Sequence record: NC_070966.1
Length of the DNA: 64,000 nt
Direction: 5' to 3' (one strand)
Shown here piece by piece: positions 1,391 to 56,532 of the stretch. Under the pieces are notes generated by a model, which was given only the letters and a program-made list of their open reading frames with translations, did no database searches and was not told the DNA's origin. Both the position numbers and the translations under genes were made by a program. Position 1 is the first letter of the stretch; every line of letters starts with the position of its first letter.

Positions 1391-1831
1391 ATGAACTGGT
1401 CAGATCTTACAATCGCATTTCAGTACGTCGTCAGCAACGTACCAGAGCCCTCAGGTAAATCTAGCGATGGGATCCTGAAAGTTGAGTTCAGTAATGATAA
1501 TCTATGGGATCGAGAATTTTACAAGAAACCTGCAGTATCTGTCGAACTCGGATCCTATCAGATAGGTACCTGGAATAGACATACAGTGATTGGACCATTC
1601 GAGTCTGAAGAAGATGCTATGGAAGGTACTCGTAAGAAGATTCTCGAAGCATTTGATATTGTTAATCAAGAGATCTTTGAACATCTTCGACCTGAGTATT
1701 ATTGTCTTGACGATGATCAGATTCCTCGATGGAATAATGAGATTAGTAGATTCTCAGATTTAGAGAAATCTAAGATGATGAATCTTGAGAACGAATTTCT
1801 CTCTGTATTAAGCGATCGGAAGGCTCTGTAG
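1391..1831 (+). CDS. Hypothetical protein
   Basis: Tightly packed ORF. Confidence 0.8.
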   Translation: MNWSDLTIAFQYVVSNVPEPSGKSSDGILKVEFSNDNLWDREFYKKPAVSVELGSYQIGTWNRHTVIGPFESEEDAMEGTRKKILEAFDIVNQEIFEHLRPEYYCLDDDQIPRWNNEISRFSDLEKSKMMNLENEFLSVLSDRKAL

Positions 1832-1838
1832 CCTTCCT
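1812..1838 (+). promoter_or_regulatory. Motif class A (near-match GCGAT-N13-AGCCTTCCT)
   Basis: One mismatch to consensus. Overlaps the hairpin GGAAGGCT-CTGT-AGCCTTCC. Confidence 0.55.
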
Positions 1839-1840
1839 CT

Positions 1841-2143
1841 TTGAATAAGAATAATATAGAGATTATTATGAGTACTATTATATCTAATCAGATGATCTGG
1901 GAATGGGCAGACGAGGACCAGTGGCTACTTTACTATAATCCTACTGATGGAACTCCTAAGATTATGATCGGAGAGATATACTGGTCTATCTCAGGATCAA
2001 TTAGATGGATTAATAAATTGACAGATTGGAGAGATACATCTTCAACTACGATCGAACAAGGTCGTGATAATCTTATGACTAGTTGTCTCGAAGAACTTAA
2101 CAGACTCAATAAATCACATCAGAGGATAACGTATGCCAACTGA
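1841..2143 (+). CDS. Hypothetical protein (start may be ATG 1868)
   Basis: ORF overlapping the next gene. Confidence 0.7.
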   Translation: MNKNNIEIIMSTIISNQMIWEWADEDQWLLYYNPTDGTPKIMIGEIYWSISGSIRWINKLTDWRDTSSTTIEQGRDNLMTSCLEELNRLNKSHQRITYAN

Positions 2144-2561
2144 GATCGTAGATGGTAAAATTGATGGGATTGACATAAATGATCCTCACTTTACTCTAAA
2201 GCATATGTATCGAATTATTCCAGAGAGTGAAGCTAGTCAAGGATACATCGATCGTATGCTTAGTTTCTTCACAGAGCATCCATACATTCCTGAACAAGAT
2301 TCATATACTAAATATGAATTTGCTAATGTTCTGACAAAACATGATCATCGATTTGAGATGACAGGATATCATTTCAATCCTGATGAAGAGTTTAGCAACC
2401 TGACTGTCGAGGATGACGAGAAGGCTATCCTAAAACCTTATGCACTGATGCTAGCATGCCTACAAGGTAATGCATTCCCTGACCTCATCGAACAATACAT
2501 GAAGGATGCTAAATACATGCTCATGTCTAACGGTTGGTGGGATAAAGTACGTCAGGCATAA
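2133..2561 (+). CDS. Hypothetical protein
   Basis: ORF with GAGGA RBS. Confidence 0.8.
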   Translation: MPTEIVDGKIDGIDINDPHFTLKHMYRIIPESEASQGYIDRMLSFFTEHPYIPEQDSYTKYEFANVLTKHDHRFEMTGYHFNPDEEFSNLTVEDDEKAILKPYALMLACLQGNAFPDLIEQYMKDAKYMLMSNGWWDKVRQA

Positions 2562-2576
2562 TCTGAAAGGATATGC

Positions 2577-2822
2577 ATGAGTATAGAATACTTTATCAAA
2601 CTAGGGATCAATCTTACATTATCATTATCCTGTATTGGTATGTTGATAATTATGAGGCAGATTCTCCACAAGGAGAGTTTTACTCAGAAAAGATTGATCA
2701 TGCTGTTCACAAGTATACTGATTGTAGTCATTCTGGCCATGATCTGGACTGACTACTCATTTGTCGTCTATCGTTATTTGCATCCAGCTGTTAAATCAGA
2801 CTTGATCCTTAACGGTAATTAA
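2577..2822 (+). CDS. Small membrane protein (2 predicted TM segments)
   Basis: Two hydrophobic stretches. Confidence 0.7.
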   Translation: MSIEYFIKLGINLTLSLSCIGMLIIMRQILHKESFTQKRLIMLFTSILIVVILAMIWTDYSFVVYRYLHPAVKSDLILNGN

Positions 2823-2836
2823 TCACTCTAGAATCG

Positions 2837-2863
2837 GCGAACCTAACGTCGGATAGCCTTCCT
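2837..2863 (+). promoter_or_regulatory. Motif class A GCGAA-N13-AGCCTTCCT (putative phage promoter)
   Basis: Exact consensus, intergenic. Confidence 0.7.
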
Positions 2864-2899
2864 TAATGTCAGACGTTCGATCGTCTTTCAGGTTGCCTT

Positions 2900-2943
2900 A
2901 GCCAGTATCTTAGTCTTCGGATTAGGATACTGGCTCTTTTTCT
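2900..2943 (+). terminator. Intrinsic terminator with cTTCGg loop
   Basis: AGCCAGTATC...TTCG...GATACTGGCT followed by CTTTTT. Confidence 0.8.
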
Positions 2944-2969
2944 GTTTCTACTGAAATTAGTGGTGTGAC

Positions 2970-3155
2970 ATGAGTATTAAAGATCGTGAGATGAAGTCTC
3001 TATGCAATCAACTCAAAACTCTGTTTTGTGGAGGTAAGATAGATGATCTCACTAGATTAATAATTTCGAATGAGCTAGCAATTTTCAATCGGAAGTACAA
3101 GAGTAATCTCACAATGGACATTTCCAATAATGGAATATTGTTCGAGGAACGTTAA
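2970..3155 (+). CDS. Hypothetical protein
   Basis: ORF coupled (TAATG) to the helicase-like gene. Confidence 0.65.
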   Translation: MSIKDREMKSLCNQLKTLFCGGKIDDLTRLIISNELAIFNRKYKSNLTMDISNNGILFEER

Positions 3156-5404
3156 TGTCAATTGTAGTCGTCAATGGTCAGAACTTTGATATCGATACTC
3201 TGGATTTCTCAGAGAAGTCGAAGAGAGATGACTGGCATTCTAATGAAGGTAAGTTCATTAGGCTGCTGAAGCAAGACGTATACCTTACCTCCAAGATCTT
3301 GGAGTATGTCGTAGATAATGTGGACGATCTCATTGTAGGATATAAATCCTCTGACGGTCTTAGTCCATCGTACTTTCGTAAGTCTCTCCTCGTAGAGATT
3401 AATGAGATTCAAAGAAATGGTAAGATCCTAACAGACAATTTTATGAATAGTCTGTTCATCCGTTATAACTCTATCTTTGTTAAGGTTATCAAAGATCTTT
3501 CATCTGCAGTCAGCATTGACGAGAAGGATGAAGACTGGGTATGGACGTATGATAGCGATGGAAAGATCGTCTTTGATTATTCCCACGAAGCCCTCTCCCG
3601 TAGACGTACTCATCTGCAGAATTTCGACCGATCCATCCTTCCATTGGACTATACCAAGCTGGAAGATGTGTTTACCAAGCCTGAATTCACTGCTTTATCC
3701 AATAAACGTGTGGTATGTTGGTCTTGTGGGTCGTATAAGACCACTTTGATCCGTCAATTCATTGTCAAACACTGGCTTGATGGCATCCTTTATGCGTGTT
3801 CTACGATCGAAGAAGTAAACCTTCTGACATATGATATTGCCTGCTTCATTGGAGAAGAGAATGTCTTCAAGTTGCATCACCAGATTGATACTGATATCTA
3901 CGCAGAGTACCATAAGAATCCTGAGTTTCTGAAAGAGAAGAGTGTTGTAGTCACTACGCACTCTCGTCTCATGAAGGATCCACCTTCGATTCTTATTACT
4001 CAGATCGATGATCCACTAGGTGGAGATTCTCGACGTCAGTATGTTCTCATCGATGAGAAACCTCAGTTCTATGATCACATCAGCTTGAACAATGATCAGG
4101 TACAGAATGTGATGAATCTGAGTACAGATCTATCTCCTCGTGAAGCTCAGAAGAAATTTCGAGAAGGTGTGAAGAATGCTTCAGGTATCTTCAAGTCTCT
4201 GAAGCATAACTCTGTTGAGTTGTTGAGTAAATCATCCGTCGATCGATCTGTCAACTTTCTTGACACGAGAGTGAATCCAACTACAGGTGCTGAGTATTTC
4301 GTACCCAACATCAACATGTTGAGAGCTGAGTTCGCAGTTAGTATGATTGTGAAACAGATCAACAAGAAGATCAAGATCGATCCGAACTACGAGATCAAGA
4401 AAGATAAGAATCGTTACTTCTACAATCTAGGTGATCTGGAATTTAAGAACCTAATCATCTTTGATGGTACAGGTGATCTGATTCTCAATGAAAGTCCTGA
4501 CTGGAAGATCATCAAAACTCCTGAGACTAGTTTTAATTTCAAAGGTAGTTTTAATGAGATTGAAAGTGATATTCGTAGAAGACTCGTAGGTAATGATCTC
4601 GAGCACTCCTCACAAGAATTCGATAAGATTATTCAATATCTTATTGGATTGACTGAGAAGCATGAGAAGATCTTCGTAGTCTCTTGGAAGGACATGAAAG
4701 GTAATGAAGATGATATGCCTAAGACAGGTGCTATCATTGACAATAATGTTCTTGCTAAGTTGACTGATCAGAGGATTGTCCAAGCGACTGACGATCTGAA
4801 TGCATACATTAAATTCAGGATTCCTCTAGAGCTTAGACATAAATTCGAGTTTACATACTACTTGTCAGGTAAAACTCGAGGTACGAATCGTTATGTTGAT
4901 TGTGATGCAGTTGTATTGTTAGGTAGTTTCTATATTCCTAATCATGCTATTGCTATGATGAATGAACAGAATAATGCGAAGATGACTAACGATATGCATT
5001 CAATGGCTGAAATCGTTCAAGCTATCTATCGTACGAGAGCTCGTAAGCTCAAACCTGTTGATGTTTATTATACATCTGATTGGAGTAAGCAACTCATTGT
5101 TGATACAATGAAGTATATTAATGCTCCGATCAGTGATGAATTCACATCAGACATACAGACTAAGATGAGATTGTTCTCAATGCAGTATGGAGTTAATATA
5201 ACTCCGACTACGACTAAGCTAATTAAACTATTAGCATCTAAGTATTCTGATCTAATAGCAGGTGATACATCTGAATATCAAGTTCCACCTGATGAAGATA
5301 GTCGAGAATTTAAGAGAGGTATTCAAAATCTCTTGAATAAAGTTGATGAATTGAGATACGAGGATAAAAAGTATTCGAGATTCTTCAAGGTAATACCCGT
5401 TTAG
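3155..5404 (+). CDS. Divergent SF2 helicase-like protein (origin-binding/UL9-like candidate)
   Basis: Walker A-like CGSYKTT, motif II-like VLIDEKP, FDGTG, motif VI-like QAIYRTRAR. Confidence 0.55.
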   Translation: MSIVVVNGQNFDIDTLDFSEKSKRDDWHSNEGKFIRLLKQDVYLTSKILEYVVDNVDDLIVGYKSSDGLSPSYFRKSLLVEINEIQRNGKILTDNFMNSLFIRYNSIFVKVIKDLSSAVSIDEKDEDWVWTYDSDGKIVFDYSHEALSRRRTHLQNFDRSILPLDYTKLEDVFTKPEFTALSNKRVVCWSCGSYKTTLIRQFIVKHWLDGILYACSTIEEVNLLTYDIACFIGEENVFKLHHQIDTDIYAEYHKNPEFLKEKSVVVTTHSRLMKDPPSILITQIDDPLGGDSRRQYVLIDEKPQFYDHISLNNDQVQNVMNLSTDLSPREAQKKFREGVKNASGIFKSLKHNSVELLSKSSVDRSVNFLDTRVNPTTGAEYFVPNINMLRAEFAVSMIVKQINKKIKIDPNYEIKKDKNRYFYNLGDLEFKNLIIFDGTGDLILNESPDWKIIKTPETSFNFKGSFNEIESDIRRRLVGNDLEHSSQEFDKIIQYLIGLTEKHEKIFVVSWKDMKGNEDDMPKTGAIIDNNVLAKLTDQRIVQATDDLNAYIKFRIPLELRHKFEFTYYLSGKTRGTNRYVDCDAVVLLGSFYIPNHAIAMMNEQNNAKMTNDMHSMAEIVQAIYRTRARKLKPVDVYYTSDWSKQLIVDTMKYINAPISDEFTSDIQTKMRLFSMQYGVNITPTTTKLIKLLASKYSDLIAGDTSEYQVPPDEDSREFKRGIQNLLNKVDELRYEDKKYSRFFKVIPV

Positions 5405-5470
5405 AGTCGAGGCGGCCTAAGGAAGCTCTAATTCCCGTTCTAATCAACCGGGAATTTAGCGTTTCTTAAG

Positions 5471-5520
5471 TAATAATAAGAAGAGCAATATAACCTTCTT
5501 ATTATAATTATAATTATCAT
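5471..5520. repeat. AT-rich island with 11-bp inverted repeat ATAATAAGAAG/CTTCTTATTAT
   Basis: Arms at 5473-5483 and 5495-5505, followed by TAATTA repeats. Confidence 0.75.
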
Positions 5521-5533
5521 AGAAAGAAAGTCA

Positions 5534-5821
5534 ATGAAACTCACGAGGACTGAAGTTTATCAAATCAACGGTAAAGAGACAGCTCATATAGTAGCTAGCA
5601 AGTTTGCTATAGATGGATCACTCTTCAACAAGTTCTATCTTGAAGTTAATGACAAGGTGAGTGCTCCTAGATTGATTAGAGATTATATTGATACTCTACA
5701 ATTGACAATCCCTGATAAGGTTGTCTATATTCTTAGCTTAGAGAAAACTGAAATTAGGACTACAGATTTTCGAAAGAAGAATAATGAGCAAGGTAGGAGA
5801 CCTACTCCAAAATCTGAGTGA
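5534..5821 (+). CDS. Hypothetical protein
   Basis: ORF. Confidence 0.7.
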   Translation: MKLTRTEVYQINGKETAHIVASKFAIDGSLFNKFYLEVNDKVSAPRLIRDYIDTLQLTIPDKVVYILSLEKTEIRTTDFRKKNNEQGRRPTPKSE

Positions 5822-5996
5822 TAAGTATGTAGCAAGTGATGAGCTTAGACAATCTCGTCTAGACATTTGTGCTACTTGTCCATTCAGTATAATGAAGAAA
5901 TTTACAATAGAACTTAATATATGTGACTCCTGTGGATGTGTTATAAGCCAGAAGACTAAGATCAAATCTGCGGAGTGTCCTGAAGGTAAATGGTGA
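5784..5996 (+). CDS. Small Cys-rich zinc-binding phage protein (DUF6171-like)
   Basis: RLDICATCP...CDSCGC...CPEGKW pattern. Confidence 0.7.
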   Translation: MSKVGDLLQNLSDKYVASDELRQSRLDICATCPFSIMKKFTIELNICDSCGCVISQKTKIKSAECPEGKW

Positions 5997-6104
5997 TGAT
6001 CATCAATCGTTCTAAGGACGGAGGATCCACTATCTACTATGGGAGTCTTAGTAGAAGATCAAGTAGAGATCCTACTGATCAAAAGATATTTTACGTGAGT
6101 AATT

Positions 6105-6518
6105 ATGACAAAAGTTGCAGTAGCAGGAGTCATCGTTAAGGATGGCAGACATGTACTCCTAGGCAAGAGAATTGGTGGCATCATTGATGGATACTATGTT
6201 CTACCTGGAGGTAAGCTCGAAGATGAAGAGTCTCTGAAGGAATGTTTAATTAGAGAGACTCTTGAAGAGACTCATCTTGAGTTAAAGAATATATCTACAA
6301 ACATTGCATATCGTGAACCTGACATCAAGGGATTTAGATTCTTGATGATCTACTTTAGAGCAGACGTAGTTGATGCTGATGCTCTAGTTAACAGTGAACC
6401 TGACAAATGTGAAGGGTGGGGATGGTATGATATCCACGATCTACCTTCACCTTGTTGGGATCTTGATCCAATCAAACAATTCTATCCTTCAGCTCTTATC
6501 AAGAAGAAAGCTATCTAA
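6105..6518 (+). CDS. Nudix hydrolase (MutT/NUDT15-like)
   Basis: Nudix box GGKLEDEESLKECLIRETLEETHL and EPDKCEGWGW. Confidence 0.9.
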   Translation: MTKVAVAGVIVKDGRHVLLGKRIGGIIDGYYVLPGGKLEDEESLKECLIRETLEETHLELKNISTNIAYREPDIKGFRFLMIYFRADVVDADALVNSEPDKCEGWGWYDIHDLPSPCWDLDPIKQFYPSALIKKKAI

Positions 6519-6731
6519 ATGAGTGATCTCTACTTTGAATACGCTAAGTCCCAGAACAATAAGACTGTAATGACGATGAAAGAATTCAAAGGTAAGAGAT
6601 ATTTAGATATCCGAGAGAAATTCTTTGATGGCACCAACTGGCATTATACCAAGAAAGGTGTAAGTATTCCACTCGAGGAGATGGAACAGTTGTCGAAGGA
6701 TCTAGAGGAACTTAAGAGAAACTCAGCATGA
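6519..6731 (+). CDS. PC4/YdbC-like ssDNA-binding protein
   Basis: EFKGKRYLDIRE...KKGVSIP. Confidence 0.85.
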   Translation: MSDLYFEYAKSQNNKTVMTMKEFKGKRYLDIREKFFDGTNWHYTKKGVSIPLEEMEQLSKDLEELKRNSA

Positions 6732-7567: not shown

Positions 7568-7584
7568 TTTAGCGGAATGTTTCA

Positions 7585-8182: not shown

Positions 8183-8424
8183 CAATAAATAGTAATGTAT
8201 TGCATGCAATTAATGATTTCAAGAACTATATCATTGAACTTGATAATGGTGTACCGTATCGTCGAGCAGTTCAGATAAGAGATCAAGCTAGTATCTGCAA
8301 TGATCTGATGAACTATACGAGTGCCAGTATGTGGGATTCTAATCCTCCTGAGTGGCAGGAATTAGATTCACTAGTGACAATGGTATTTCAAAAGACAAAT
8401 AAATTGATCTACAAGAGCGAATGA
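8179..8424 (+). CDS. Hypothetical protein
   Basis: ATGA-coupled ORF. Confidence 0.7.
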   Translation: MTINSNVLHAINDFKNYIIELDNGVPYRRAVQIRDQASICNDLMNYTSASMWDSNPPEWQELDSLVTMVFQKTNKLIYKSE

Positions 8425-8443
8425 GAGGTCGATTAACCTTCCT
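8417..8443 (+). promoter_or_regulatory. Motif class A GCGAA-N13-AACCTTCCT
   Basis: Exact consensus, upstream of the flavoprotein gene. Confidence 0.7.
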
Positions 8444-8476
8444 CTTTACAACAACGAATCCAGGTATTTTTAGATA

Positions 8477-10941: not shown

Positions 10942-11306
10942 TACTATTCATGCATGAAGATGGATCCTACTACAGTAGTGAAGAGATCTTCCAAGACATT
11001 CATACTAATATTGATACTTCAGATGAGGGATCTTTTCTGCTCAAGTATCTTGAGAGAGGATTTGAACCTCCTGCAGATGCTACCTCTGAGACAAAGTATG
11101 AGTATCATCTTGCCAAAATTGGATTTGGTCGATGGATCCGTAACTCATACGGTCTATGGCAAGAAGATAATCCTCATGTCATACTGAATCCTTCTCCAAA
11201 TGACGAAGGTATCATTGATCATCCACTATTTCCAGACAATCTTAGTGGAACTATAATCAATAGATTGATCCAGCACTATCAGTCTAAGCTTCCTCAGGCT
11301 TCATGA
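10938..11306 (+). CDS. Conserved hypothetical protein (DUF6794-like)
   Basis: GRWIRNSYGLW...HP..PDNLS pattern. Confidence 0.55.
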   Translation: MILFMHEDGSYYSSEEIFQDIHTNIDTSDEGSFLLKYLERGFEPPADATSETKYEYHLAKIGFGRWIRNSYGLWQEDNPHVILNPSPNDEGIIDHPLFPDNLSGTIINRLIQHYQSKLPQAS

Positions 11307-14560: not shown

Positions 14561-14605
14561 GCCGTACAGGAGTAAGGATAGCCTTCTCTCTTGTACGGCA
14601 ATTCT
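14561..14605 (+). terminator. Hairpin enclosing a class A 3' element (AGCCTTCTC at 14580)
   Basis: GCCGTACA...TGTACGGC stem with a weak T tract. Confidence 0.45.
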
Positions 14606-19590: not shown

Positions 19591-19617
19591 ACGAATTTGA
19601 GGTCCTAAAGCCTTCCT
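19591..19617 (+). promoter_or_regulatory. Motif class A ACGAA-N13-AGCCTTCCT
   Basis: Consensus match. Overlaps the terminator hairpin. Confidence 0.65.
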
Positions 19618-23714: not shown

Positions 23715-23741
23715 CCTCTAGAGAGGTTAATAAGCCTTCCT
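23711..23741 (+). promoter_or_regulatory. Palindrome TTAACCTCT-AG-AGAGGTTAA plus class A 3' element
   Basis: Inverted repeat at 23711-23730, AGCCTTCCT at 23733. Confidence 0.5.
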
Positions 23742-26875: not shown

Positions 26876-26902
26876 GCGAAGTTAGGTGCGATAAACCTTC
26901 CT
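26876..26902 (+). promoter_or_regulatory. Motif class A GCGAA-N13-AACCTTCCT
   Basis: Exact consensus, intergenic. Confidence 0.7.
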
Positions 26903-39622: not shown

Positions 39623-39844
39623 ATGTCTGATATGTTCAACGAACTAAACATTGAAGTAGCTCAACGAGTTACGGATAACCATATTAATACTGCTATTAAA
39701 CGTGCATCTGCAGCATGTGCTCCTCAGTCGAGTTCGAGATTCGATGGTATTCATTGCATCACATGTAATGAAGCTATCCCTGCGAGAAGACTGGAACTTG
39801 GACGTATCAGATGTATTGATTGTCAATACGATCTGGAAAACTAA
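39623..39844 (+). CDS. TraR/DksA C4-type zinc finger protein
   Basis: CITCNEAIPARR...RCIDCQ. Confidence 0.85.
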   Translation: MSDMFNELNIEVAQRVTDNHINTAIKRASAACAPQSSSRFDGIHCITCNEAIPARRLELGRIRCIDCQYDLEN

Positions 39845-41140: not shown

Positions 41141-43396
41141 ATGGATCTCAATAAGTTCAAAGTAACTATCGGTGGTAAGTCTGTCAATGTGACCGCATTC
41201 ACTCCTGACACTACAGCTACCAAGGCTGCAGGTAAGACTCACCATGTCCTTCTCATCGACCGTTCCGGTTCGATGTACTCCTCGATCAGTTATCTGATTG
41301 ATCAGGTTCAGAATACAGTTAAGCTCATCGGTCAAGACGATCTGATTAGCATTCTCTGGTTCTCTGGTCAGGGTAGTAAGGGAGTTATCTGCCAAGGTGT
41401 TAAGGGATCTGAGGACATTACTACTGTTCTCAATAAGTTCCGTAGCGTTCTTGGTACGACATGCTTCTCTGAACCTCTCGCAGAGTCGACTAATGTTGTT
41501 GCTATGTACAAGGACGTTGTTGATCAGTCCGTTATCACTCTCTTCACGGACGGTTGCCCAGTAGTCAGCTGGTCTACTAAGGAAGAGACTGAACGTTGCC
41601 ACGAGATCATTAAAGATCTCGTTGATGATCTCAATGTCTCGGCAGTCAATACCGTAGGTTATGGTAACTACTACAATCGTGATTTCTTGCAGACTCTTTC
41701 CGAGGCATCGGATCAGGGGATGTTCGTTCACAGTAGTAAGATTGAACAATTTACTGACGTCTTCACCTCAGCAGTGGAGGTCGCCAGTGGTCTGGTACTT
41801 CAGTCTCTGGACATCGAAGTATCGGATGACGACGCTGATATTCTTTACGTAGGTAATGGTACCAGTGGTCTTCACAAGTCTGACCTCAGCATGCGTCGTC
41901 TTGACAAGTCTCGTAACCTTGTCTTCATCGTATCTGAGAATTCCAAGTACGATCTGACGATCAACGGTGTTACGGATCACAAGATTGAGTCCATGACTCA
42001 GTCCTCGAATCCTGAATTCGTTGAGAACTTCCTCTACTCGTATGCAGATTCTCTCTACTATCGTGGAGAACGTCAGAAGGCTCTTGACATTATTGTCAAC
42101 AATCTTCGCGACAAGCATCTCGCAGATCTGATGATGAATGCATTCACCATCGACGAAGTAGCTGATGTTCAGAAAGCTCTGAACATTGCATGTGAGTTCA
42201 AGTCTGAACGTTACATCAGTGGTAAGTGCGGAGTAGGATACCTTCCCAAGAAGGATGCATTCTGCTTGATGGATCTCTTTAATCTGTTCTTCAAGAAGGA
42301 TGTAACCGCATATTATGTCCCATTCTCGAAGAATGTTGAGGAGTACCAGCGTATCGGTCGTAAGGTAACCGATGAATTCAATCTGTTCACCAAGTCTCCT
42401 GAAGAAGTTATCGTACCACTGAACGACTTCGTCTGGAACAAGGACAAGCTGAATCTCTCGATCCGTATTCTGATCCCTGGTACAGTAACTCTCAATCCGA
42501 AGGCTGCTAAGACAGTAGGACTTGCTTCTACCTATCCGTCCAAGATCTATCGTAACCATACGTTTATCAAAGACGGTCAGCTGAATATTAAGACTGCAGA
42601 ATTCCTTCTGTCGTCTGATGTACTTGAAGTACTTAATGCGAATAAGATCGGTAACCGTATCCTGTCTACGGATGAGGATGTTGGTGGGATCCTTCTGAAT
42701 CGAGTAGTAGTCGATCTCACGAAGCTTCCTGTTATCAATCGTCTTTACATTGATAACTCCGACTCTCTGGATGATCTGAAGGATATTGTCGTCAATATCT
42801 CTAAGGCTGAGGCTTCCATCAAGGTAGCTAAGGATGCACTGGCAACCGTTCTGGCATCGAATGTGAATCTGACGAAGGTCGGAGCATATAAGGGTCTTAC
42901 GGCTGATCAGATCACCGTACTCGAAAATCACGGTATCTCCAAGGATGGAGTCTACGGAGGTATCGATAATGTCAAGCCTAAGGCTGCGGATTCAGATAGC
43001 TACGAAGTACGTACTCTCGAATTCTATCTGAAGGGATTCTCGTCGCTTCCTTCCATCGCTGACTTCAACAAGATGCTCAATGGTGAGAAGAGAGTGAATG
43101 CTCCTGGACAAATGATGATCGACTATCTGAAGGATCTTGAATTCCGACTGAAGGCCGAGAATCTTAGTCTGAATCAGCCGAATGCAGCTGTTAGAGACTT
43201 CCTTAATGAGGAACTCGAAGAGCTTAAGGCTGGCCTAGCTACTGCTCGTAATCATCTCAATGCTGTCAAGATGGCTAAGGTGCTTACACATGACTTCTTC
43301 CATGGTCTAGTTGCTGACGACAAGGGTAACTACTCTTATGGAGATGAGAATCATACTATGATTCTTCGTAATGACCGTACTGTAGAGTACGTTTAA
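41141..43396 (+). CDS. Large vWA-domain protein
   Basis: MIDAS LIDRSGSM, GTT, FTDG in the N-terminal 200 aa. Confidence 0.85.
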   Translation: MDLNKFKVTIGGKSVNVTAFTPDTTATKAAGKTHHVLLIDRSGSMYSSISYLIDQVQNTVKLIGQDDLISILWFSGQGSKGVICQGVKGSEDITTVLNKFRSVLGTTCFSEPLAESTNVVAMYKDVVDQSVITLFTDGCPVVSWSTKEETERCHEIIKDLVDDLNVSAVNTVGYGNYYNRDFLQTLSEASDQGMFVHSSKIEQFTDVFTSAVEVASGLVLQSLDIEVSDDDADILYVGNGTSGLHKSDLSMRRLDKSRNLVFIVSENSKYDLTINGVTDHKIESMTQSSNPEFVENFLYSYADSLYYRGERQKALDIIVNNLRDKHLADLMMNAFTIDEVADVQKALNIACEFKSERYISGKCGVGYLPKKDAFCLMDLFNLFFKKDVTAYYVPFSKNVEEYQRIGRKVTDEFNLFTKSPEEVIVPLNDFVWNKDKLNLSIRILIPGTVTLNPKAAKTVGLASTYPSKIYRNHTFIKDGQLNIKTAEFLLSSDVLEVLNANKIGNRILSTDEDVGGILLNRVVVDLTKLPVINRLYIDNSDSLDDLKDIVVNISKAEASIKVAKDALATVLASNVNLTKVGAYKGLTADQITVLENHGISKDGVYGGIDNVKPKAADSDSYEVRTLEFYLKGFSSLPSIADFNKMLNGEKRVNAPGQMMIDYLKDLEFRLKAENLSLNQPNAAVRDFLNEELEELKAGLATARNHLNAVKMAKVLTHDFFHGLVADDKGNYSYGDENHTMILRNDRTVEYV

Positions 43397-45047: not shown

Positions 45048-45298
45048 TTCCATCAAAATGGACGGTTTATATCGTAGAGTGTAGAGATAAATCCTTGTAT
45101 ACAGGAATCACTACTGATATAAACCGTCGTCTACTCCAGCACAATAATGGTACTGGAGCCAAGTATACAAGAAGCAGAAGACCTGTTAGTATCGTTTATA
45201 CCGAGAAATTACCAGATAGGTCTTCTGCTCTCAAACGTGAATACGCTATTAAGCAACTATCTCGTAAGGAGAAGTTGCAATTAGTAAATTTTAGATAG
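45038..45298 (+). CDS. GIY-YIG nuclease (UPF0213/YhbQ-like)
   Basis: VYIVEC.D.SLYTGIT.D..RRL.QHN.G.GAKYTR.RRP. Confidence 0.92.
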   Translation: MEIVPSKWTVYIVECRDKSLYTGITTDINRRLLQHNNGTGAKYTRSRRPVSIVYTEKLPDRSSALKREYAIKQLSRKEKLQLVNFR

Positions 45299-45328
45299 GT
45301 TCACTTAACGTCTCCAAGGGATTCTTCT
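45295..45328 (+). promoter_or_regulatory. Motif class B copy 2
   Basis: Matches 232-265; overlaps the hairpin TCTCCAAGG/CCTTGGAGA. Confidence 0.6.
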
Positions 45329-45366
45329 TTAGGAAGGGACCTTGGAGATTCTTAGAGGTAATTTAA

Positions 45367-46042: not shown

Positions 46043-46069
46043 GCGAAGTAGAGGCCGGAGAGCCTTCCT
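46043..46069 (+). promoter_or_regulatory. Motif class A GCGAA-N13-AGCCTTCCT
   Basis: Exact consensus, heads the topoisomerase gene run. Confidence 0.75.
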
Positions 46070-50083: not shown

Positions 50084-50085
50084 CA

Positions 50086-50985
50086 ATGAACGATTTTAAT
50101 GTAATCCTTACAGGTTCTGCTGGTTACATTGGAAGCATCGTTGGCGATCGTCTACTGAAATCCAATTCGATTGATTTGGAGACAGTAGACGTCGTCTCTG
50201 ACGTTCTTCCAGTAGATACTATCTTAACTGAAGTTGGTAATCTATCCAACAAGTCATCTGATGTCCTTGTTCATCTTGCTGCAAAGATCTCAGTAGTCGA
50301 ATCTCATAAGCAAGCTCGTCAGTACTACGAGAACAATTGTAGTCAATTCCATGAGATGTTGAATGATCGTGGTAACTATTTCAAGCATGTTATCTATGCA
50401 TCCTCTTTCTCGATTTATGATTCTGATTTGAGTATCTATCCTCAGTCTGTCTATGCATCCACCAAATACGAAGGTGAATGGATTCTCAAGAGATGGGCTC
50501 AGATGACGAATCGAGATTATTCAATCCTACGATTTGCCAATCCAATTGGCGTTAGTCAATCACTTCACTCTCATATTGCAGACCGTATTCAATCGAGCTA
50601 TGCTAATGTTATGTGGAGACTTGCTCGATGCAAATTACTAGGTGAGATGTTCTACATTCATGATCTACCTGGTATGACACGTGATTTTTATCCCGTTGAA
50701 TGGATTGGATACGCTATCGATTGGATCGCGAAGAATGGTCCCGTAGGTACTGTAAATCTAGGTAGTGGTAAGCCTGTATCGGTTATGGATCTTCTTCAGC
50801 ATATCTGTGAGAAGTATAATATCAGTTACAAATATGTTCTACCACCTGAAGGTACTGCTCTAGGTATTACCAAGAAGGTTGATGTATTCAAAGAAGGTAT
50901 TCCTGATTTTGATACATACGATCCAGTTGTATATTGTGAGAAGTCGTTTTTAGATTATCTATCGTTGATTCAGAACGCGAACTAA
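50086..50985 (+). CDS. NAD-dependent epimerase/dehydratase (GalE-like SDR)
   Basis: TGSAGYIG, HLAAKISVVES, YASTK (YxxxK), LRFANPIG. Confidence 0.88.
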   Translation: MNDFNVILTGSAGYIGSIVGDRLLKSNSIDLETVDVVSDVLPVDTILTEVGNLSNKSSDVLVHLAAKISVVESHKQARQYYENNCSQFHEMLNDRGNYFKHVIYASSFSIYDSDLSIYPQSVYASTKYEGEWILKRWAQMTNRDYSILRFANPIGVSQSLHSHIADRIQSSYANVMWRLARCKLLGEMFYIHDLPGMTRDFYPVEWIGYAIDWIAKNGPVGTVNLGSGKPVSVMDLLQHICEKYNISYKYVLPPEGTALGITKKVDVFKEGIPDFDTYDPVVYCEKSFLDYLSLIQNAN

Positions 50986-51003
50986 CGCTAGATTAGCCTT
51001 CCT
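50977..51003 (+). promoter_or_regulatory. Motif class A GCGAA-N13-AGCCTTCCT
   Basis: Exact consensus upstream of the glycosyltransferase genes. Confidence 0.75.
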
Positions 51004-51030
51004 TCTCGTAGAATGAATAAGAGGATCACC

Positions 51031-51213
51031 ATGAAAGATCTACGTGAATTCAAATCTAAGCTTGATGCTAAGTTCGATACTCAGACATCTTGGGGTAAGA
51101 ATCAGATCAAGCAAGTCATCAATGATACTTATATTGAAATCATTGAAAGTAAAGTAGAAGGTACTATCGAGCAGTCGACTCCTTCTAATCGTATCGACGA
51201 AGACTCTAAGTAA
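51031..51213 (+). CDS. Hypothetical protein
   Basis: GAGGA RBS favours ATG 51031. Confidence 0.7.
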   Translation: MKDLREFKSKLDAKFDTQTSWGKNQIKQVINDTYIEIIESKVEGTIEQSTPSNRIDEDSK

Positions 51214-51235
51214 TTTTCTAGTCAAGGTTAACAAT

Positions 51236-52423
51236 ATGAATTTTCTTTATATCACAAGAAGCATTGATCCGCTAGCTGCTGATCATCGTCCTGAAGCATA
51301 TGATCGTTATCGATTCTATGCTCCGATGATGTCACGACTAGCTGAGATCGGTGGAGGTGACGTCTACCTTCAGACTCGTTATAATCCTAAGGATTATCGT
51401 CCTGGTGGTACGATTGAAAGAATGGAAAGAAATTTCCGTCTTCCTAAGAAGTACAAGACTGGTGATAAGATTGATATGATCGTATGTGCCATCTTCTGCC
51501 CAGACGATGACATTACATTCAATGAGGATCTGAACAAGTTTCGTCAGACTCTTGAAGATACAGGTGCTCCGTATATCTATCATGACTCTGACAAAGAATT
51601 CTCTACTCAGGACGATCAGCAAGATCTTTTCCATCCAGGAAATAAGAACTATTTCCTTCAGACAATATCTAAGCTTCCAGAGGATGATATTCTCCGATCC
51701 CGACTACGCTGCGTGGCTACGTCGGTTCCGGATGCAGATTATCATCAGATTCTGAAGGATAATCTCAAGGTCGATGTAACGTATCTACCTGCTACGTTCT
51801 GGGGAGACTGGAAAGATAAGTTTGGATACACTCCTCTTTCAGATCGTAAGTACGATCTGACATTCCTTCGTGACTTCTATCTGAATCCGAAGCGTTCAGT
51901 CATTTTGAAGAATCTTGGTACTGGTGTATCGGATATCAGTGTTCTTCTTGGATCTCGTAGTGGCGACCCTTCTAGTCGTGGAGGATACATCAGCCATAAG
52001 GTTCCGACGATTGATTTTGATCAGATGCGTCAAGGAGCTACGTACAATGATCTATCGAAGTACATGTCTAAGTCTCGTCTGACTCCGTCTACGAGTATTT
52101 ATATGCGTGTCACTTCTAAGCTATTCGAAGCAGCTGAGAGTCGTACTCTAGCACTACTCTTCTCTCCGTGCTTCTATTCAGACGTAGTTGATCATCCTTC
52201 TGAGGCAGATGCTTATCTGAGTCAACTTGCTCTTGTAATTCCAGGATCCACTACTGTAAGTCAGTTGATTACACGTATTCGTAGTCTGACTGATGAAGAA
52301 TACTTGAAGCTTGTTGAGGTTCAGGATAAGCTCGTTGAGACTGTATTCAGTATCAAATCTGATTACATCACAGGCAAGCTGACCAAGATCATCACGGATT
52401 ATGTAGGTAATGTGAATGGCTAA
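51236..52423 (+). CDS. Putative GT-B glycosyltransferase (DNA beta-glucosyltransferase-like)
   Basis: C-terminal half YDLTF..., TSKLFEA, LITRIRSL..EEY....QD loosely resembles T4 BGT; next to the epimerase and GT-A genes. Confidence 0.45.
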   Translation: MNFLYITRSIDPLAADHRPEAYDRYRFYAPMMSRLAEIGGGDVYLQTRYNPKDYRPGGTIERMERNFRLPKKYKTGDKIDMIVCAIFCPDDDITFNEDLNKFRQTLEDTGAPYIYHDSDKEFSTQDDQQDLFHPGNKNYFLQTISKLPEDDILRSRLRCVATSVPDADYHQILKDNLKVDVTYLPATFWGDWKDKFGYTPLSDRKYDLTFLRDFYLNPKRSVILKNLGTGVSDISVLLGSRSGDPSSRGGYISHKVPTIDFDQMRQGATYNDLSKYMSKSRLTPSTSIYMRVTSKLFEAAESRTLALLFSPCFYSDVVDHPSEADAYLSQLALVIPGSTTVSQLITRIRSLTDEEYLKLVEVQDKLVETVFSIKSDYITGKLTKIITDYVGNVNG

Positions 52424-53294
52424 TGTTCTAGTTACTCTCATTACCAATCGACCAGATATTTCTTCGGAACGATGGATCGGTACCATCGGAAAGCTATCTA
52501 AGCTTTCCGAGTACCATGATATGACCTACTCGATTCTTCTACAACCTCCTTTTACAGTAGAAGACTGTGATAAAGTTCGTTCTCGAGTAGTTGAAGCACT
52601 CGGTCCTAAGAATCAGGTAGTCGTAGAGCATTTTATTAATCCTCCAGGTCCATTCAATTTTAGAACTGCTCGAAATCAGGCTATGTTGAATGTACCGTAT
52701 CTGAATACTTTTGACTACGTTCTTATCACTGACGATGACTTCAAGTTCAGTGGTCCTACTCCTAAGGGATATGACTCATGGGAACGTTATCATCAGGCTA
52801 TTAAGTATCTCGATGAAAACCGTCGATGCGGTGGTGTATTAATCAAAGGTATGTTTGGATCTCCTCCAGTCGATAAGGGTGGAAATGAGGTATCAAAGGT
52901 ACATGACGAGTACTACTCGACCAATCGAGGCATTCTTCATCGTAATGTGATGAAGTACGATAACGTAGATTGGATCTACTCAAATGAATGCTTCGATTAT
53001 CCTTCTGCTCTCGAGGATGCAGCAGCTTGTTTCTCTCGAATTGAGCTCGGCTACTATTATGCTCGTATCTGGAAGTCACCCACCACACCTCTTCCTGTGA
53101 AGCAGACATGTGCTGATGACATCCCTGATGACAATATCTACTCGCGACATATGGTCAATGAAGTAGGTATTGGTAAAGCTATCCGTGAACGTTACGACGA
53201 TCCTACATGGGAAGTCGATCAGAAGCGTATGCCTAAGAAACTCAACAATCTTAAACTCGAAGCCATGAACAATCGTGGATGGGTTGTAACCTAA
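52416..53294 (+). CDS. Putative GT-A (GT2-like) glycosyltransferase
   Basis: FRTARNQAM, YVLITDDDFKF (DxD), LEDA. Confidence 0.6.
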   Translation: MANVLVTLITNRPDISSERWIGTIGKLSKLSEYHDMTYSILLQPPFTVEDCDKVRSRVVEALGPKNQVVVEHFINPPGPFNFRTARNQAMLNVPYLNTFDYVLITDDDFKFSGPTPKGYDSWERYHQAIKYLDENRRCGGVLIKGMFGSPPVDKGGNEVSKVHDEYYSTNRGILHRNVMKYDNVDWIYSNECFDYPSALEDAAACFSRIELGYYYARIWKSPTTPLPVKQTCADDIPDDNIYSRHMVNEVGIGKAIRERYDDPTWEVDQKRMPKKLNNLKLEAMNNRGWVVT

Positions 53295-53305
53295 GGAGTC
53301 TCGAC

Positions 53306-53545
53306 ATGAAACATCTTCTTGAGAAAGCAACGACTCTCGTCAAGCAGTCTAATAAACTGACTCTGGAATACCGTAAGTCTCCAGATGAATTGAAATCTAA
53401 GACTCAAGAGATCGTCAAGCACTTTCTCGAATTCAACGAGATCGAATCGAAAGAAGATTTCATAGATCAATTGTCGTCCAAATCTGAGGAGACAGGTAAT
53501 ATGGATTACCTGTCTGCAGCTGAGATTATCCGAGAGTACTCTTAA
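53306..53545 (+). CDS. Hypothetical protein
   Basis: AAGGAG RBS before ATG 53306. Confidence 0.75.
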   Translation: MKHLLEKATTLVKQSNKLTLEYRKSPDELKSKTQEIVKHFLEFNEIESKEDFIDQLSSKSEETGNMDYLSAAEIIREYS

Positions 53546-53850
53546 TGTTTAAAATTACTGTAGAGTCGTCTCAACCTGTTAAGAGTATCAACATTGAGTT
53601 CGGTGAAACTCAGGAGACGAAGGCTGAATTCTATCCTGTACCGACCTTTGAGACTAAAGGTGTAGAGAGTCTTAAATACGAGACTCCTCCTTCATCTGAG
53701 TCATATGAAGACGTTCTAGCAAGACGAGCATCGACTGTATCGACTACTCCTGTAAAGCCTAAAGAGACTGAGACTGCTCCAGAAGTAGTCGAGGATCTCA
53801 CTAATCGACCTGCACTTGTTGATCAATCCTTTGCAGGATCTACTTTCTAA
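53545..53850 (+). CDS. Hypothetical protein
   Basis: TAATG-coupled; MFKITVES. Confidence 0.75.
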   Translation: MFKITVESSQPVKSINIEFGETQETKAEFYPVPTFETKGVESLKYETPPSSESYEDVLARRASTVSTTPVKPKETETAPEVVEDLTNRPALVDQSFAGSTF

Positions 53851-53858
53851 GAGGTAAT

Positions 53859-54824
53859 ATGAAAACTGTATTAGGTCTTGATCCTGGGTACGGAGACTTC
53901 AAGGTATGCTTCGGTAATTCTAAAGGGATTATCTCTAAGCTATACAAGTTCAACTCCGTACTAGGTCGTGTTGATGTCAGTCAACATATCAACGATACTC
54001 GAGTTTATGGATATAAAGGTACGACCTACTATGTAGGTGAGATGGCCTTGAAACTTGAGTCATCTCGAATCATCGACTTGATGTCTTACAACAATCTGGA
54101 GACATTCTCTCCTCTCCTGATTGAACATGTCATCAATGAACTAGGAGAAGTTCCAGATATCGTCGTATGTGGTCTTTCGATCGCTCACGTTGACTATTCA
54201 GGATACTATCGAGATGCGATTCTTAACTATCTTGTTAAGGAGAAGAATCTTCCAATCAAGGATGTCCGCATCATCCCACAAGGTGTAGGTGGTAAGTTAA
54301 CGTATGACAAGTATGGTCGTACATTCCCTGCCCTCACATCAGAATTCAGTGATGACAACAACTATGTAGGTTGTGATATTGGATTCAATACACTCGATGT
54401 ATTCCATGTCATTCAGAACAAGGTATCTCCTAACTTGATTAGAGGTATTGAGAGTCAAGGTGTAGTCAAGATCGTAACTCGACTTCTTGAGTATATCAAG
54501 AATGACTACAGTCTGGAGTTCTCTGTTAAGGAAGGTAAGAACATCCTTGATAATGGTCAATTTAAGATCCGTGGACGTGAATTTGATGTCACCAAACAGA
54601 TTGAAGTGATCAAACGTTCTTATCTTGAAGAAGTCAAGGAACTCATCGAGAATGAATTCGGAGCAGTACTTGACAAGGTCGAGAAGATCAAGATGTTTGG
54701 AGGAGGTTCATATCTCTTCAATACGATGAATGACTCCTTCATCGAAACTCCAGAATCTCGTGCTGAATACTATAATTCCATCGGGAATTATCTACATGGC
54801 TTGACAATTGTCGAGAAAGATTAA
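53859..54824 (+). CDS. ParM/StbA-family actin-like ATPase
   Basis: Phosphate-1 GLDPGYGDFK, connect PQGVGG, phosphate-2 CDIGFNTLD, adenosine GGGS. Confidence 0.88.
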   Translation: MKTVLGLDPGYGDFKVCFGNSKGIISKLYKFNSVLGRVDVSQHINDTRVYGYKGTTYYVGEMALKLESSRIIDLMSYNNLETFSPLLIEHVINELGEVPDIVVCGLSIAHVDYSGYYRDAILNYLVKEKNLPIKDVRIIPQGVGGKLTYDKYGRTFPALTSEFSDDNNYVGCDIGFNTLDVFHVIQNKVSPNLIRGIESQGVVKIVTRLLEYIKNDYSLEFSVKEGKNILDNGQFKIRGREFDVTKQIEVIKRSYLEEVKELIENEFGAVLDKVEKIKMFGGGSYLFNTMNDSFIETPESRAEYYNSIGNYLHGLTIVEKD

Positions 54825-54828
54825 TCTT

Positions 54829-54868
54829 AAGGTCTACTAGAAGAGATTCTAGTAGACCTTTTCTTTTT
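54829..54868 (+). terminator. Intrinsic terminator
   Basis: AAGGTCTACTAGAA/TTCTAGTAGACCTT stem followed by TTCTTTTT. Confidence 0.85.
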
Positions 54869-54877
54869 GAGGATAAA

Positions 54878-55237
54878 ATGCTCAAATTAGATAGAAGTGT
54901 CAAAGAGTCTGAGTGTCTACACTACGAATTTGATATTAATGGTGGTTATAGCATTACACTAAAAATCGTCTTTGATGATACTGAAGAGAATGCGATTCAC
55001 TTTGATTCTCATGATCACGATGTTCAGATTAATGGATTTAAATATTATATTTTAGACTCAGATACATACAGTAATGGGACATCAATGAGGATTATGAAGA
55101 TATCGTCTACAAATGATGATAGTGCTAAATACCTGATGTCTTATATTGAAGGTTTTATCATCAAAAATAAATTAGGAAACTCTAGCGGACTTCGATATAG
55201 ATCTTATATACGATCAGATCAACATTCACTCAAGTGA
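54878..55237 (+). CDS. Hypothetical protein
   Basis: GAGGA RBS. Confidence 0.7.
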   Translation: MLKLDRSVKESECLHYEFDINGGYSITLKIVFDDTEENAIHFDSHDHDVQINGFKYYILDSDTYSNGTSMRIMKISSTNDDSAKYLMSYIEGFIIKNKLGNSSGLRYRSYIRSDQHSLK

Positions 55238-55246
55238 GGACAGAAG

Positions 55247-55975
55247 ATGGCTCGTTGCTATGTAGGATGTAGTGGATTCTCGTATAATCATTGGAATGAT
55301 AACTTCTACCCTGCAGGAGTAGAGCGGTTTTCATTTTATACGAGTCAATTTGATTCATTAGAGATCAATAGTTCATTCTACAGATTACCTAGTGCAAGCG
55401 TATTCTACTCATGGTATCGACGATCACCTGCTCATATGACATTCACTGTGAAAGCTCCTCAGACGATTACTCATCGTAAGAAGCTAAAGGATGCTGACGA
55501 TATAGTTCAGAGATTCTATGAGAATACTCTTGAGCTAGGTGACAAGATGAAATGTGTCTTATGGCAGTTACCTCCTAATTTCTCCATAAGAATGTATGAT
55601 CGTGTCAAGAAATTCTGTGACAGTATTCATAACAGATTTCCTAATTCAGCATTCGAGTTCAGACATCCTTCATGGATGCAGACTCACGTACCTCAACTTC
55701 TATCTGCATACGACTTTGAGTTTGTACGTACAGATTTTCATAAATACGTAAATGTATCCATGGATGGATCCTCGTCTAAATTCCAGTACTATCGATTACA
55801 TGGACCTACAGGTCAGTATCACGGTCGCTACACTGATGAGTTTCTTGAGAATATAGCTGATCGTCTAACGGATGGATCATTCGTATTCTTCGATAATGAT
55901 AGTGGAGGTCAAGCTCCTAGGGATGCTAAAAGATTAATCAAAATTCTAGAGACAAGAAATGAAATTAAATTATAG
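55247..55975 (+). CDS. DUF72 (YecE-like) protein
   Basis: VGCSGFSY..W...FYP, EINSSFY, FTVKAPQ.ITH, LWQLPP, EFRH.SW, YYRLHG, FFDND. Confidence 0.92.
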   Translation: MARCYVGCSGFSYNHWNDNFYPAGVERFSFYTSQFDSLEINSSFYRLPSASVFYSWYRRSPAHMTFTVKAPQTITHRKKLKDADDIVQRFYENTLELGDKMKCVLWQLPPNFSIRMYDRVKKFCDSIHNRFPNSAFEFRHPSWMQTHVPQLLSAYDFEFVRTDFHKYVNVSMDGSSSKFQYYRLHGPTGQYHGRYTDEFLENIADRLTDGSFVFFDNDSGGQAPRDAKRLIKILETRNEIKL

Positions 55976-56504
55976 AGCATATGCAGGAATTGGATCAAGA
56001 AGTACTCCTCCACATATTCTTGAATTTATGAGAATTCTAGCATTCAAGCTTGGATCTCAAGAAGATCCGTGGACTGGTCGATCAGGTCACGCTGATGGTG
56101 CAGATGATGCATTCGAAGTAGGTATGGAACAAGCTAATGGACCTATGGAGATCTTTCTACCGTGGAGAGGTATGGCTAACAGTCGATGTAAGAGTGATTC
56201 TCCGTATTACGAAATCAAAACAATTGCTTACGATCTAGCTTCTAGGATTCACCCTAAATGGTACGGATTAACTCATGGAGCTAAGAAACTTCATGCTAGG
56301 AATACTTATCAAGTCTTAGGTTACGATCATCAGACTTGGAGTAAAGCTGTTGTATGCTATACTTCTGACGGTCTACCGATTGGAGGTACTCGTACAGCGA
56401 TTAAGATAGCAGAGATGCACGGTATTCCGGTTATCAATCTAGGTGATCCTGAGTGTAAATACGAAACTCCTGATCAAGTTGTGGAATATTTAAACTCTCT
56501 ATAG
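55959..56504 (+). CDS. SLOG-superfamily (DprA/Smf-like) protein
   Basis: YAGIGSR.TP, RSGHADGADDAFE, LHARN..QVLG, GGTRTAI. Confidence 0.75.
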   Translation: MKLNYRAYAGIGSRSTPPHILEFMRILAFKLGSQEDPWTGRSGHADGADDAFEVGMEQANGPMEIFLPWRGMANSRCKSDSPYYEIKTIAYDLASRIHPKWYGLTHGAKKLHARNTYQVLGYDHQTWSKAVVCYTSDGLPIGGTRTAIKIAEMHGIPVINLGDPECKYETPDQVVEYLNSL

Positions 56505-56505
56505 A

Positions 56506-56532
56506 GCGAATCTAGCGTGGGAAAGCCTTCCT
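56506..56532 (+). promoter_or_regulatory. Motif class A GCGAA-N13-AGCCTTCCT
   Basis: Exact consensus, intergenic. Confidence 0.75.

Follow-up and report, generated by a model that had tools for sequence, protein, structure and literature searches.

Rhizobium phage RHph_TM30 (genus Cuauhnahuacvirus, Kleczkowskaviridae) has a genome recorded as circular and 207,623 base pairs (bp) long (NC_070966.1 / MN988521.1). The window that we analysed is a 64,000-nucleotide (nt) stretch identical to genome positions 62001-126000, and the subject of this work is a two-box motif repeated along it, RCGAA-N13-ARCCTTCY, here termed class A, which is probably a phage-specific promoter. Plus-strand genes span 1-159.5 kilobases (kb) of the genome and run from small early-type open reading frames (ORFs) to genes for nucleotide metabolism, replication and recombination and 20 transfer RNA (tRNA) genes. 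The structural and lysis module occupies the minus strand at 159.6-206.9 kb, and many homing endonuclease genes are annotated in the genome. Positions below refer to the window unless they are given as genome positions.

A pattern search with RCGAA-N13-ARCCTTCY returned nine matches in the window, all on the plus strand, compared with 0.01 expected from shuffled sequence. These are the nine exact copies that a preliminary description of the stretch had listed, each reproduced at its coordinate. The whole genome contains 19 exact copies, of which 18 are on the plus strand and one is on the minus strand (genome 160755). The minus-strand copy lies within the minus-strand module upstream of gp329, so that all 19 are on the local coding strand. 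The 13-nt spacer proposed for the motif is indeed fixed, as the 18 plus-strand copies and the single minus-strand copy at N13 are set against none at N8-12, N14 or N16-19 in the whole genome; a lone RCGAA-N15 match on the minus strand was taken as chance. The extended consensus reads cA-GCGAA-nT.AGG.TC...-AGCCTTCC-TTCTT, followed loosely by GT(C/A)AG, and all eight positions of the 3' box are nearly invariant. A weight matrix 33 nt wide was then applied at a threshold of at least 20 bits, where shuffled genomes reached a maximum of 18 bits, and gave 33 matches across the genome, 32 of them on the plus strand. Both near-copies that had been described (1812 and 33001) pass this threshold, as do two of the three copies reduced to the 3' element (11306 and 23733), while the third, at 14580, is an intergenic AGCCTTCT that scores below 20 bits. 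The class A sites of the window, with one associated hairpin, are as follows.

1812..1837, plus strand: near-copy, GCGAT-N13-AGCCTTCC, overlapping the gp175 stop codon (1831), with the gp176 start (1868) 30 nt beyond the motif; 31.8 bits
2837..2862, plus strand: exact copy, 15 nt past the gp178 stop codon, with a strong terminator downstream; 33.7 bits
2900..2944, plus strand: hairpin resembling an intrinsic terminator, with a 16-bp stem and a T run; the strong terminator (2900-2935) is 38 nt after the copy at 2837
8417..8442, plus strand: exact copy, overlapping the gp189 stop codon (8424) and 34 nt upstream of gp190 (8477); 34.7 bits
11288..11313, plus strand: spacer and 3' box (AGCCTTCC at 11306) without a 5' box, followed after 17 nt by gp195; 31.8 bits
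14580..14587, plus strand: a lone 3' box (AGCCTTCT) in the gap from the end of gp204 (14551) to the start of gp205 (14617); below the matrix threshold and the weakest member
19591..19616, plus strand: exact copy, starting 1 nt past the gp211 stop codon and 42 nt upstream of gp212; 34.5 bits
23715..23740, plus strand: 3' box only (AGCCTTCC at 23733), between the genes for the gp220 helicase and the gp221 DnaB-like helicase; 20.5 bits
26876..26901, plus strand: exact copy, between gp224 and gp225; 36.4 bits
33001..33026, plus strand: near-copy with ACCAA, overlapping the gp232 stop codon and 31 nt upstream of gp233; 36.0 bits
35472..35497, plus strand: exact copy with the AGCCTTCT variant, overlapping the end of gp236 and 67 nt upstream of gp237; 21.4 bits
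41014..41039, plus strand: exact copy, 102 nt ahead of gp245, with a terminator-like hairpin on its upstream side (-54 to -21); 32.7 bits
46043..46068, plus strand: exact copy, 21 nt upstream of gp253; 40.7 bits, the best matrix score in the window
50977..51002, plus strand: exact copy, overlapping the gp258 stop codon and 29 nt upstream of gp259; 32.3 bits
56506..56531, plus strand: exact copy, 2 nt past the gp267 stop codon and 30 nt upstream of gp268; 36.2 bits

The typical copy in the window overlaps or immediately follows the stop codon of the upstream gene, with the motif starting within 20 nt of that codon at 11 of 13 sites, and at most sites 17-67 nt separate the 3' box from the next start codon. 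The preliminary description had placed every copy that it noticed at a gene boundary on the coding strand, and the 8-mer AGCCTTCC largely bears this out over the genome: it has 28 occurrences on the local coding strand and three on the opposite strand, and of the 28, 23 are at most 40 nt from an inter-ORF gap, a zone that takes in 14.7% of genome positions. The motif is thus not equally common inside coding sequences and on the minus strand, the distribution that had been named as incompatible with a promoter. Matrix matches above ~29 bits are nearly all at gene boundaries; the weaker ones, such as that at 43177, are mostly intragenic and probably due to chance. In the intergenic sequence of genome positions 61-160 kb, AGCCTTCC and CCTTCC rank with the most enriched words (top 8-mers). 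The units that class A precedes are those of nucleotide metabolism, replication, recombination and tRNAs. Copies outside the window include one 10 nt upstream of tRNA-Ser and one 18 nt upstream of tRNA-Asn, and another stands ahead of the first plus-strand gene, in the non-coding region between the late (minus) and early (plus) blocks, where the copy has no plus-strand gene upstream of it.

A sister motif, class B, shares this architecture. Its consensus is aTAG-GKTCA-sTTAGG.TC...-RRGGATTC-TTCTTTGAAGG, with the core GKTCA-N13-RRGGATTC-TTCTT, and its 16 copies in the genome are all on the plus strand, all intergenic and all built on a 13-nt spacer. Both classes consist of a 5-mer, 13 nt with a TTAGG-like core, an 8-mer and then TTCTT, and differ in both boxes. 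The copies of class B are mostly in the early-gene region, where GGATTCTT and TAGGTTCA rank first among enriched intergenic words (1-61 kb), and they include genome positions 30, 14355, 27054, 58586, 142711 and 154284 of NC_070966. Two lie in the window.

233..273, plus strand: class B element (TAGGTTCA...GGGATTCTTC...GAAGG) of 5-13-8 geometry, upstream of gp171
45296..45336, plus strand: class B element, upstream of gp251

Class B precedes most operons of the early region, the ligase/primase operon and the operon that holds a phage gene for an RNA polymerase beta-prime subunit. The structural module (159.6-207.6 kb, minus strand) contains no class B element and one class A copy, and its few intergenic gaps hold only loose TATAAT- or TTTATA-like words; a third, late promoter type is likely. 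As a separate observation, a long AT-rich tract precedes the first late gene.

We compared the sites with those of related phages. The nine further records that the genus has share at least 95% identity with RHph_TM30. Phage RHph_Y65 retains all window sites except that at 11288, where homology breaks inside the spacer and a different gene cassette lies downstream. At 46043, past a cassette difference, the sequences of the two phages match again from 17 nt upstream of the motif, and at 1812 both boxes are kept in Y65 despite only 85% identity over the surrounding 326 nt. Most class A copies lie at junctions that do not vary in this comparison. More distant relatives were found in metagenomes by protein searches only, at 55%, 53% and 41% identity for beta-prime and 55%, 51% and 42% for the helicase; a helicase-based search of viral and metagenome contigs for the locus found nothing. 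The 55% relative carries GCGAA, a 13-nt spacer of different sequence and AGCCTTCCTT upstream of a 5'-deoxynucleotidase/DNA polymerase operon, the position of the copy at genome 149124 in RHph_TM30. Here both boxes and the 13-nt register are kept, and spacer and flanks have diverged. A minus-strand copy in the same relative, ahead of a 97-amino-acid (aa) gene, matches the copy at genome 160755. Contig L043, probably from the same phage, has three copies of AGCCTTCC, all on the coding strand at gene boundaries, and the one at L043:9493 sits in the gap equivalent to gp224/gp225 (26876). The 51% relative has three copies of CAGAGCCTTCCTT at boundaries, without a recognisable 5' box. Together, L043 and L044 hold six coding-strand copies at gene boundaries and none on the opposite strand. 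Retention of the 3' box, with a 5' box that is variable or absent, suggests that the 3' box is the conserved core and the 5' box auxiliary. In the 42% relative (helicase identity; L046, a 130-kb contig from Logan SRR6811659) neither motif class is present, and at least one intergenic region holds a canonical-looking TTGACA-N17-TATACT. Because this relative has a sigma-70-like site in place of both classes, the unusual promoter-like system seems to be confined to the lineage of RHph_TM30. A scan of IMG/VR with a 15-base pattern, against this very large collection, gave 24 single-copy matches that were taken as chance and revealed no related phage.

The motif differs from host-type promoter sequence. 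As had been stated, it resembles neither the sigma-70 nor the sigma-54 consensus: cAGCGAA-N13-AGCCTTCC is unlike TTGACA-N17-TATAAT and unlike the rhizobial consensus, CTTGAC-N17-CTATAT. Sigma-70-like sites are not enriched (67 seen, 65.5 expected). In layout, class A does have what defines two-box promoters of the sigma-70 family, namely two boxes at a fixed distance that lie upstream of genes and are oriented with them. The 'promoter' features of phage YerA41, all of them sigma-70 predictions, were set aside as uninformative.

Copies had also been described as often lying next to a terminator. Terminator-like hairpins do occur within ~100 nt of some 6-7 of the 23 strong sites, but their position varies and there is no consistent adjacency. 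A hairpin stands upstream of the motif in one case (41014) and overlaps it in two or three. At 19591 the motif spacer supplies the 5' arm of a 10-bp terminator stem; RNA initiated beyond the motif would be without this arm and escape termination, and read-through transcripts would terminate. Such hairpins are enriched in the first 20 kb of the window (16, compared with 8.8). An intrinsic terminator was rejected as the identity of the motif, as a hairpin with a T run does not accompany each copy. A hairpin or cruciform promoter, or an RNA stem-loop, was likewise rejected: some copies can pair AGGCT of the spacer with AGCCT of the 3' box, but across all sites folding does not exceed that of shuffled controls or of spacer-swapped ones (for the latter, mean z -0.59, p = 0.22). 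With no significant conserved hairpin in the motif, an N4-type hairpin promoter was dismissed, and a known RNA family was rejected after an Rfam search of the window gave zero matches.

From the motif statistics, the geometry, strand and position, the conservation and the gene content, all of which are direct observations, we infer promoter function, start site, timing and enzyme. The most likely interpretation is that RHph_TM30 has two phage-specific promoter families, of which class A is one. This reading, which we hold to be probable, is based on the coding-strand bias, including the lone minus-strand copy, on the gene-boundary sites, fixed spacing, copies upstream of tRNA genes and conservation, and on a second class of the same geometry.

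Several observations weigh against a promoter. No sigma factor and no MotA/AsiA-type, gp55 or gp33 protein was found by Pfam (73 proteins) or PHROGs (20 proteins), scans that covered mainly proteins above ~120 aa. Five of the 8 bases of the 3' box are G or C, an unusually high share for an element that must melt. The 5' box is variable or absent in the metagenomic relatives, reading GCTGA or GCGGG in L043. Since the named relatives are more than 95% identical, the evidence of conservation comes mostly from ~8 sites in three metagenomic contigs. Some good matrix matches are intragenic (genome 129486 and 130294). Finally, a strong terminator-like hairpin lies between the motif and the next gene at 2837, at 26876 and at genome 17542. 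These downstream hairpins are the chief complication for a simple promoter, which would possibly need read-through, attenuation, a terminator-resistant polymerase or short RNAs. At 2837 the motif and terminator could form an attenuator or give a short RNA of ~70-80 nt. Genome 17542 has a similar layout of motif and then terminator. Downstream of the hairpin at 2900 lies an unannotated 61-aa ORF (2970-3155), which overlaps the gp179 start by one base and is coupled to gp179.

Each of the other functions considered would explain part of this evidence, but none accounts jointly for strict directionality, fixed spacing, the copies near tRNA genes, the copy at the head of the gene array and a sister class of the same geometry. 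The motif might be an operator, bound by a phage repressor or activator beside real promoters of another kind. Two boxes 13 bp apart would suit any sequence-specific DNA-binding protein, the complementarity of AGG.T in the spacer to AGCCT makes a partial dyad in some copies, and a cognate sigma factor was not found. We nevertheless regard an operator as unlikely, for the sites show no other candidate promoter, with sigma-70-like sites at chance level, and the intergenic gaps of ~50-90 nt leave little room for one; moreover, the boxes are unrelated in sequence and so do not form a true dyad, and the element is strictly directional relative to genes. A signal acting in polycistronic RNA, such as a processing or cleavage site, a stability element or a pyrimidine tract resembling an anti-Shine-Dalgarno sequence (CCUUCCUUCUU), would fit intergenic, coding-strand-specific copies that often overlap the upstream stop codon and that flank tRNA genes, where processing occurs, and hairpins after some copies could protect a new 5' end. 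Two short boxes with exactly 13 unconserved nt between them are atypical of single-stranded RNA recognition, however, and folding no better than in spacer-swapped controls, the lack of an Rfam match and the copy that heads the plus-strand array without a plus-strand gene upstream make this explanation quite improbable.

It is very improbable that recombination or mobility at gene-cassette boundaries, comparable to the promoter-stem-loop cassettes of T4-type phages or to homing-endonuclease targets, is the main role of the motif. The many homing endonuclease genes and the two cassette differences from Y65 that break in or beside it (11288 and 46043) speak for such a role, but most copies mark junctions that are invariant among relatives, homologous exchange needs neither strict orientation nor strict spacing, and short repeated promoters are expected to recombine as a by-product, as has been described in T4-type phages (PMC2839356). 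The closeness of 11 of 13 motif starts to an upstream stop codon, within 20 nt, and the terminator-like hairpins after three copies could instead point to a factor-dependent termination or pause signal at gene ends. Such a signal would have no need of a sister class of the same geometry concentrated in the early region, most copies are without hairpin or T run, and some stand directly upstream of tRNA genes or at the head of the plus-strand array, so that we give termination hardly any credence.

If class A is a promoter, as we favour, a DNA-binding specificity component of RNA polymerase would contact the 3' box AGCCTTCC(TT) as the core element, in a role like that of a -10 element. The same component would also touch the 5' box (c)AGCGAA, an auxiliary element at a distance of exactly 13 bp on the upstream side. 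With ~19.5 bp, or about two helical turns, between their centres, the two boxes would lie on one face of the DNA. The start site would follow within a few nucleotides, in the conserved TTCTT-GT(C/A)AG region, and the transcripts would cover the operons for nucleotide metabolism, replication, recombination and tRNAs at genome positions 61-150 kb. As class B stands mainly at small early genes and at the beta-prime operon, a temporal cascade may operate in which class B is early and class A middle. The enzyme would most likely be the host core RNA polymerase, re-programmed by phage proteins for which gp334 and an as yet unrecognised specificity factor are the candidates.

The preliminary description had ascribed the motif to a phage RNA polymerase, sigma factor or activator. 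The promoter reading contained in this is supported. As to the factor, besides a PC4-like protein and a borderline DksA/TraR zinc finger, the Pfam and PHROGs scans turned up a beta-prime homologue and no sigma factor, MotA or AsiA. The homologue, gp334 (L005:29259-32642, genome 155259-158642, outside the window), is an unsplit bacterial-type beta-prime of 1127 aa that matches solved RpoC chains with E = 1e-152 and 34% identity. Its catalytic NADFDGD motif, bridge helix, two zinc clusters and sigma-docking clamp helices are preserved, its trigger loop does not have the SI3 insertion of enterobacteria, and the C-terminal ~50 residues of RpoC are missing; it is predicted to be catalytically intact. 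Searches of the genome by tblastn with the beta subunits of Salmonella (RpoB) and YerA41 found no beta subunit; in the distant relative YerA41 and in the relatives GN1 and Carin-5 a beta gene adjoins that for beta-prime. There is no T7-like RNA polymerase gene in the annotation or among the large proteins scanned. Proteins of the DksA/TraR family bind the secondary channel of RNA polymerase. The borderline match in RHph_TM30 is gp241 (39632-39844), 70 aa long, whose DksA/TraR-type C4 zinc finger scores 23.3 bits, just under the Pfam cut-off of 24.9.

The neighbourhood of beta-prime is kept in relatives in the order of a DNA polymerase A fused to uracil-DNA glycosylase (UDG), two genes, a 217-aa gene, beta-prime, a 62-aa gene and a 230-aa gene. 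The family of 217 or 218 aa is always encoded just upstream of beta-prime, as gp336 (L005:28354-29010) in RHph_TM30 and as homologues at L039:6163-6819, L037:9312-9959 and L041:9335-9988, and a profile search found 68 homologues. Its structure was predicted with AlphaFold from a homologue of gp336. A first model, from three sequences, was poor, with a predicted local distance difference test (pLDDT) score of 54 and no fold match; a second, from an alignment of 40 sequences, was confident (pLDDT 82.7) and has two helical domains. Compared with solved structures the model gave no match with E < 1, and among viral models it matched only unnamed members of its own family. The family profile found nothing significant among PDB sequences, and Pfam gave no consistent matches across members. 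We regard the family as a candidate polymerase partner and nothing more.

A more unusual possibility, for which the gene content is the support, is a hybrid polymerase around the lone phage beta-prime. Here gp334 would replace the host beta-prime within the host core, and a specificity subunit unrelated to sigma-70, with the 218-aa protein as candidate, would direct the enzyme to classes A and B. This scheme is conceivable though doubtful; if true, the phage would take over its host by replacing a polymerase subunit, perhaps as an adaptation to a genome with hypermodified thymidine. The replicative polymerase gp339 (L005:23854-27183) is a fusion of uracil-DNA glycosylase and family A DNA polymerase, and gp050 (DNA polymerase X) and gp347 (NAD ligase) are encoded elsewhere in the genome. 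A UDG/polymerase A fusion that co-occurs with polymerase X and ligase is a signature described for phages with thymidine-hypermodified DNA (PMC13697223). Because the three proteins match this signature, the DNA of RHph_TM30 may be modified in the same way.

Among known systems, the middle (gp28) and late (gp33/34) promoters of Bacillus phage SPO1 have two boxes 17-18 nt apart, a non-host consensus and several classes for temporal control. The motifs of RHph_TM30 are similar in their two boxes, fixed spacing, lack of relation to the host consensus and presence of more than one class per architecture in one phage. They differ in that no sigma-70-family protein was detected in the scans, the 13-nt spacing from 5-mer to 8-mer is shorter and the 3' box is GC-rich. 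T4 middle promoters combine a MotA box at -30 with a sigma-70 -10 element and are used with AsiA. Class A is comparable in having an upstream box ~12 bp from a -10-like element and in serving genes of replication and nucleotide metabolism, and the A...T of its 3' box (nAGCCT) could mimic the key A-11/T-7. The geometry, GCGAA-N12-nAGCCT, would suit a TAnnnT 11-13 bp from the upstream box, but no more than 8 of 19 copies have a T at the equivalent of T-12, and the GCC core, which is invariant, does not look like a sigma-70 -10 element. Furthermore, the 3' box is far more invariant than TAnnnT, and the scanned proteins include no MotA/AsiA homologue.

T4-type late promoters are a single 8-bp element, TATAAATA, read by the minimal sigma factor gp55 with gp33 and the clamp. 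Class A has a comparable, nearly invariant 8-bp core, the 3' box, which is the only box kept in relatives; however, its sequence is unrelated, it serves non-structural genes, with one copy in the structural module, and the scanned proteins contain no gp55 or gp33 homologue. Late promoters of this type have been discussed for rhizobiophages (PMC4621102). With phages phiKZ and AR9, RHph_TM30 shares a homologue of a catalytic subunit of cellular RNA polymerase and promoters unlike those of the host. The phiKZ and AR9 promoters are short single elements rather than two-box ones. Their non-virion RNA polymerases comprise full sets of beta and beta-prime, split into several proteins (PMC7598289, PMC5312081), whereas RHph_TM30 has one unsplit beta-prime and no beta found by tblastn. 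Class A is also unlike T7-type promoters, with an unconserved 13-nt spacer instead of a contiguous ~20 bp and no T7-like polymerase gene found. The mobile promoter-stem-loop cassettes of T4-type phages (PMC2839356) are similar as repeated elements at the junctions of variable cassettes, but class A has no obligatory stem-loop, and two such junctions were observed between RHph_TM30 and Y65. Each specific family thus fails on a defining feature, be it sigma-70-like sequence, MotA/AsiA, a T7-like polymerase, a hairpin or a complete phage multisubunit polymerase.

Phage-specific promoter classes are familiar in kind, and the motif itself is no surprise. Literature searches found no work on transcription in the Kleczkowskaviridae, for which the two promoter-like classes of one strict architecture provide a first, predicted transcription map of ~40 transcription units. 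The elements, ~45 bp long, are candidate host-orthogonal control elements for rhizobia. They also make an odd feature of the clade testable, that is, a bacterial-type beta-prime gene without a detected beta or sigma, and with it the question of whether a phage could swap a single catalytic subunit into the host polymerase.

Some further genes of the genome were noted. The annotated 'partition protein' gp264 (53859-54824) is homologous to the actin-like ParM/Alp7A proteins. Noted along with gp245 (41141-43396), gp273 (59433-62957) is a 1174-aa AAA+ ATPase with MoxR/dynein-like modules, and a large von Willebrand A protein is encoded as well.

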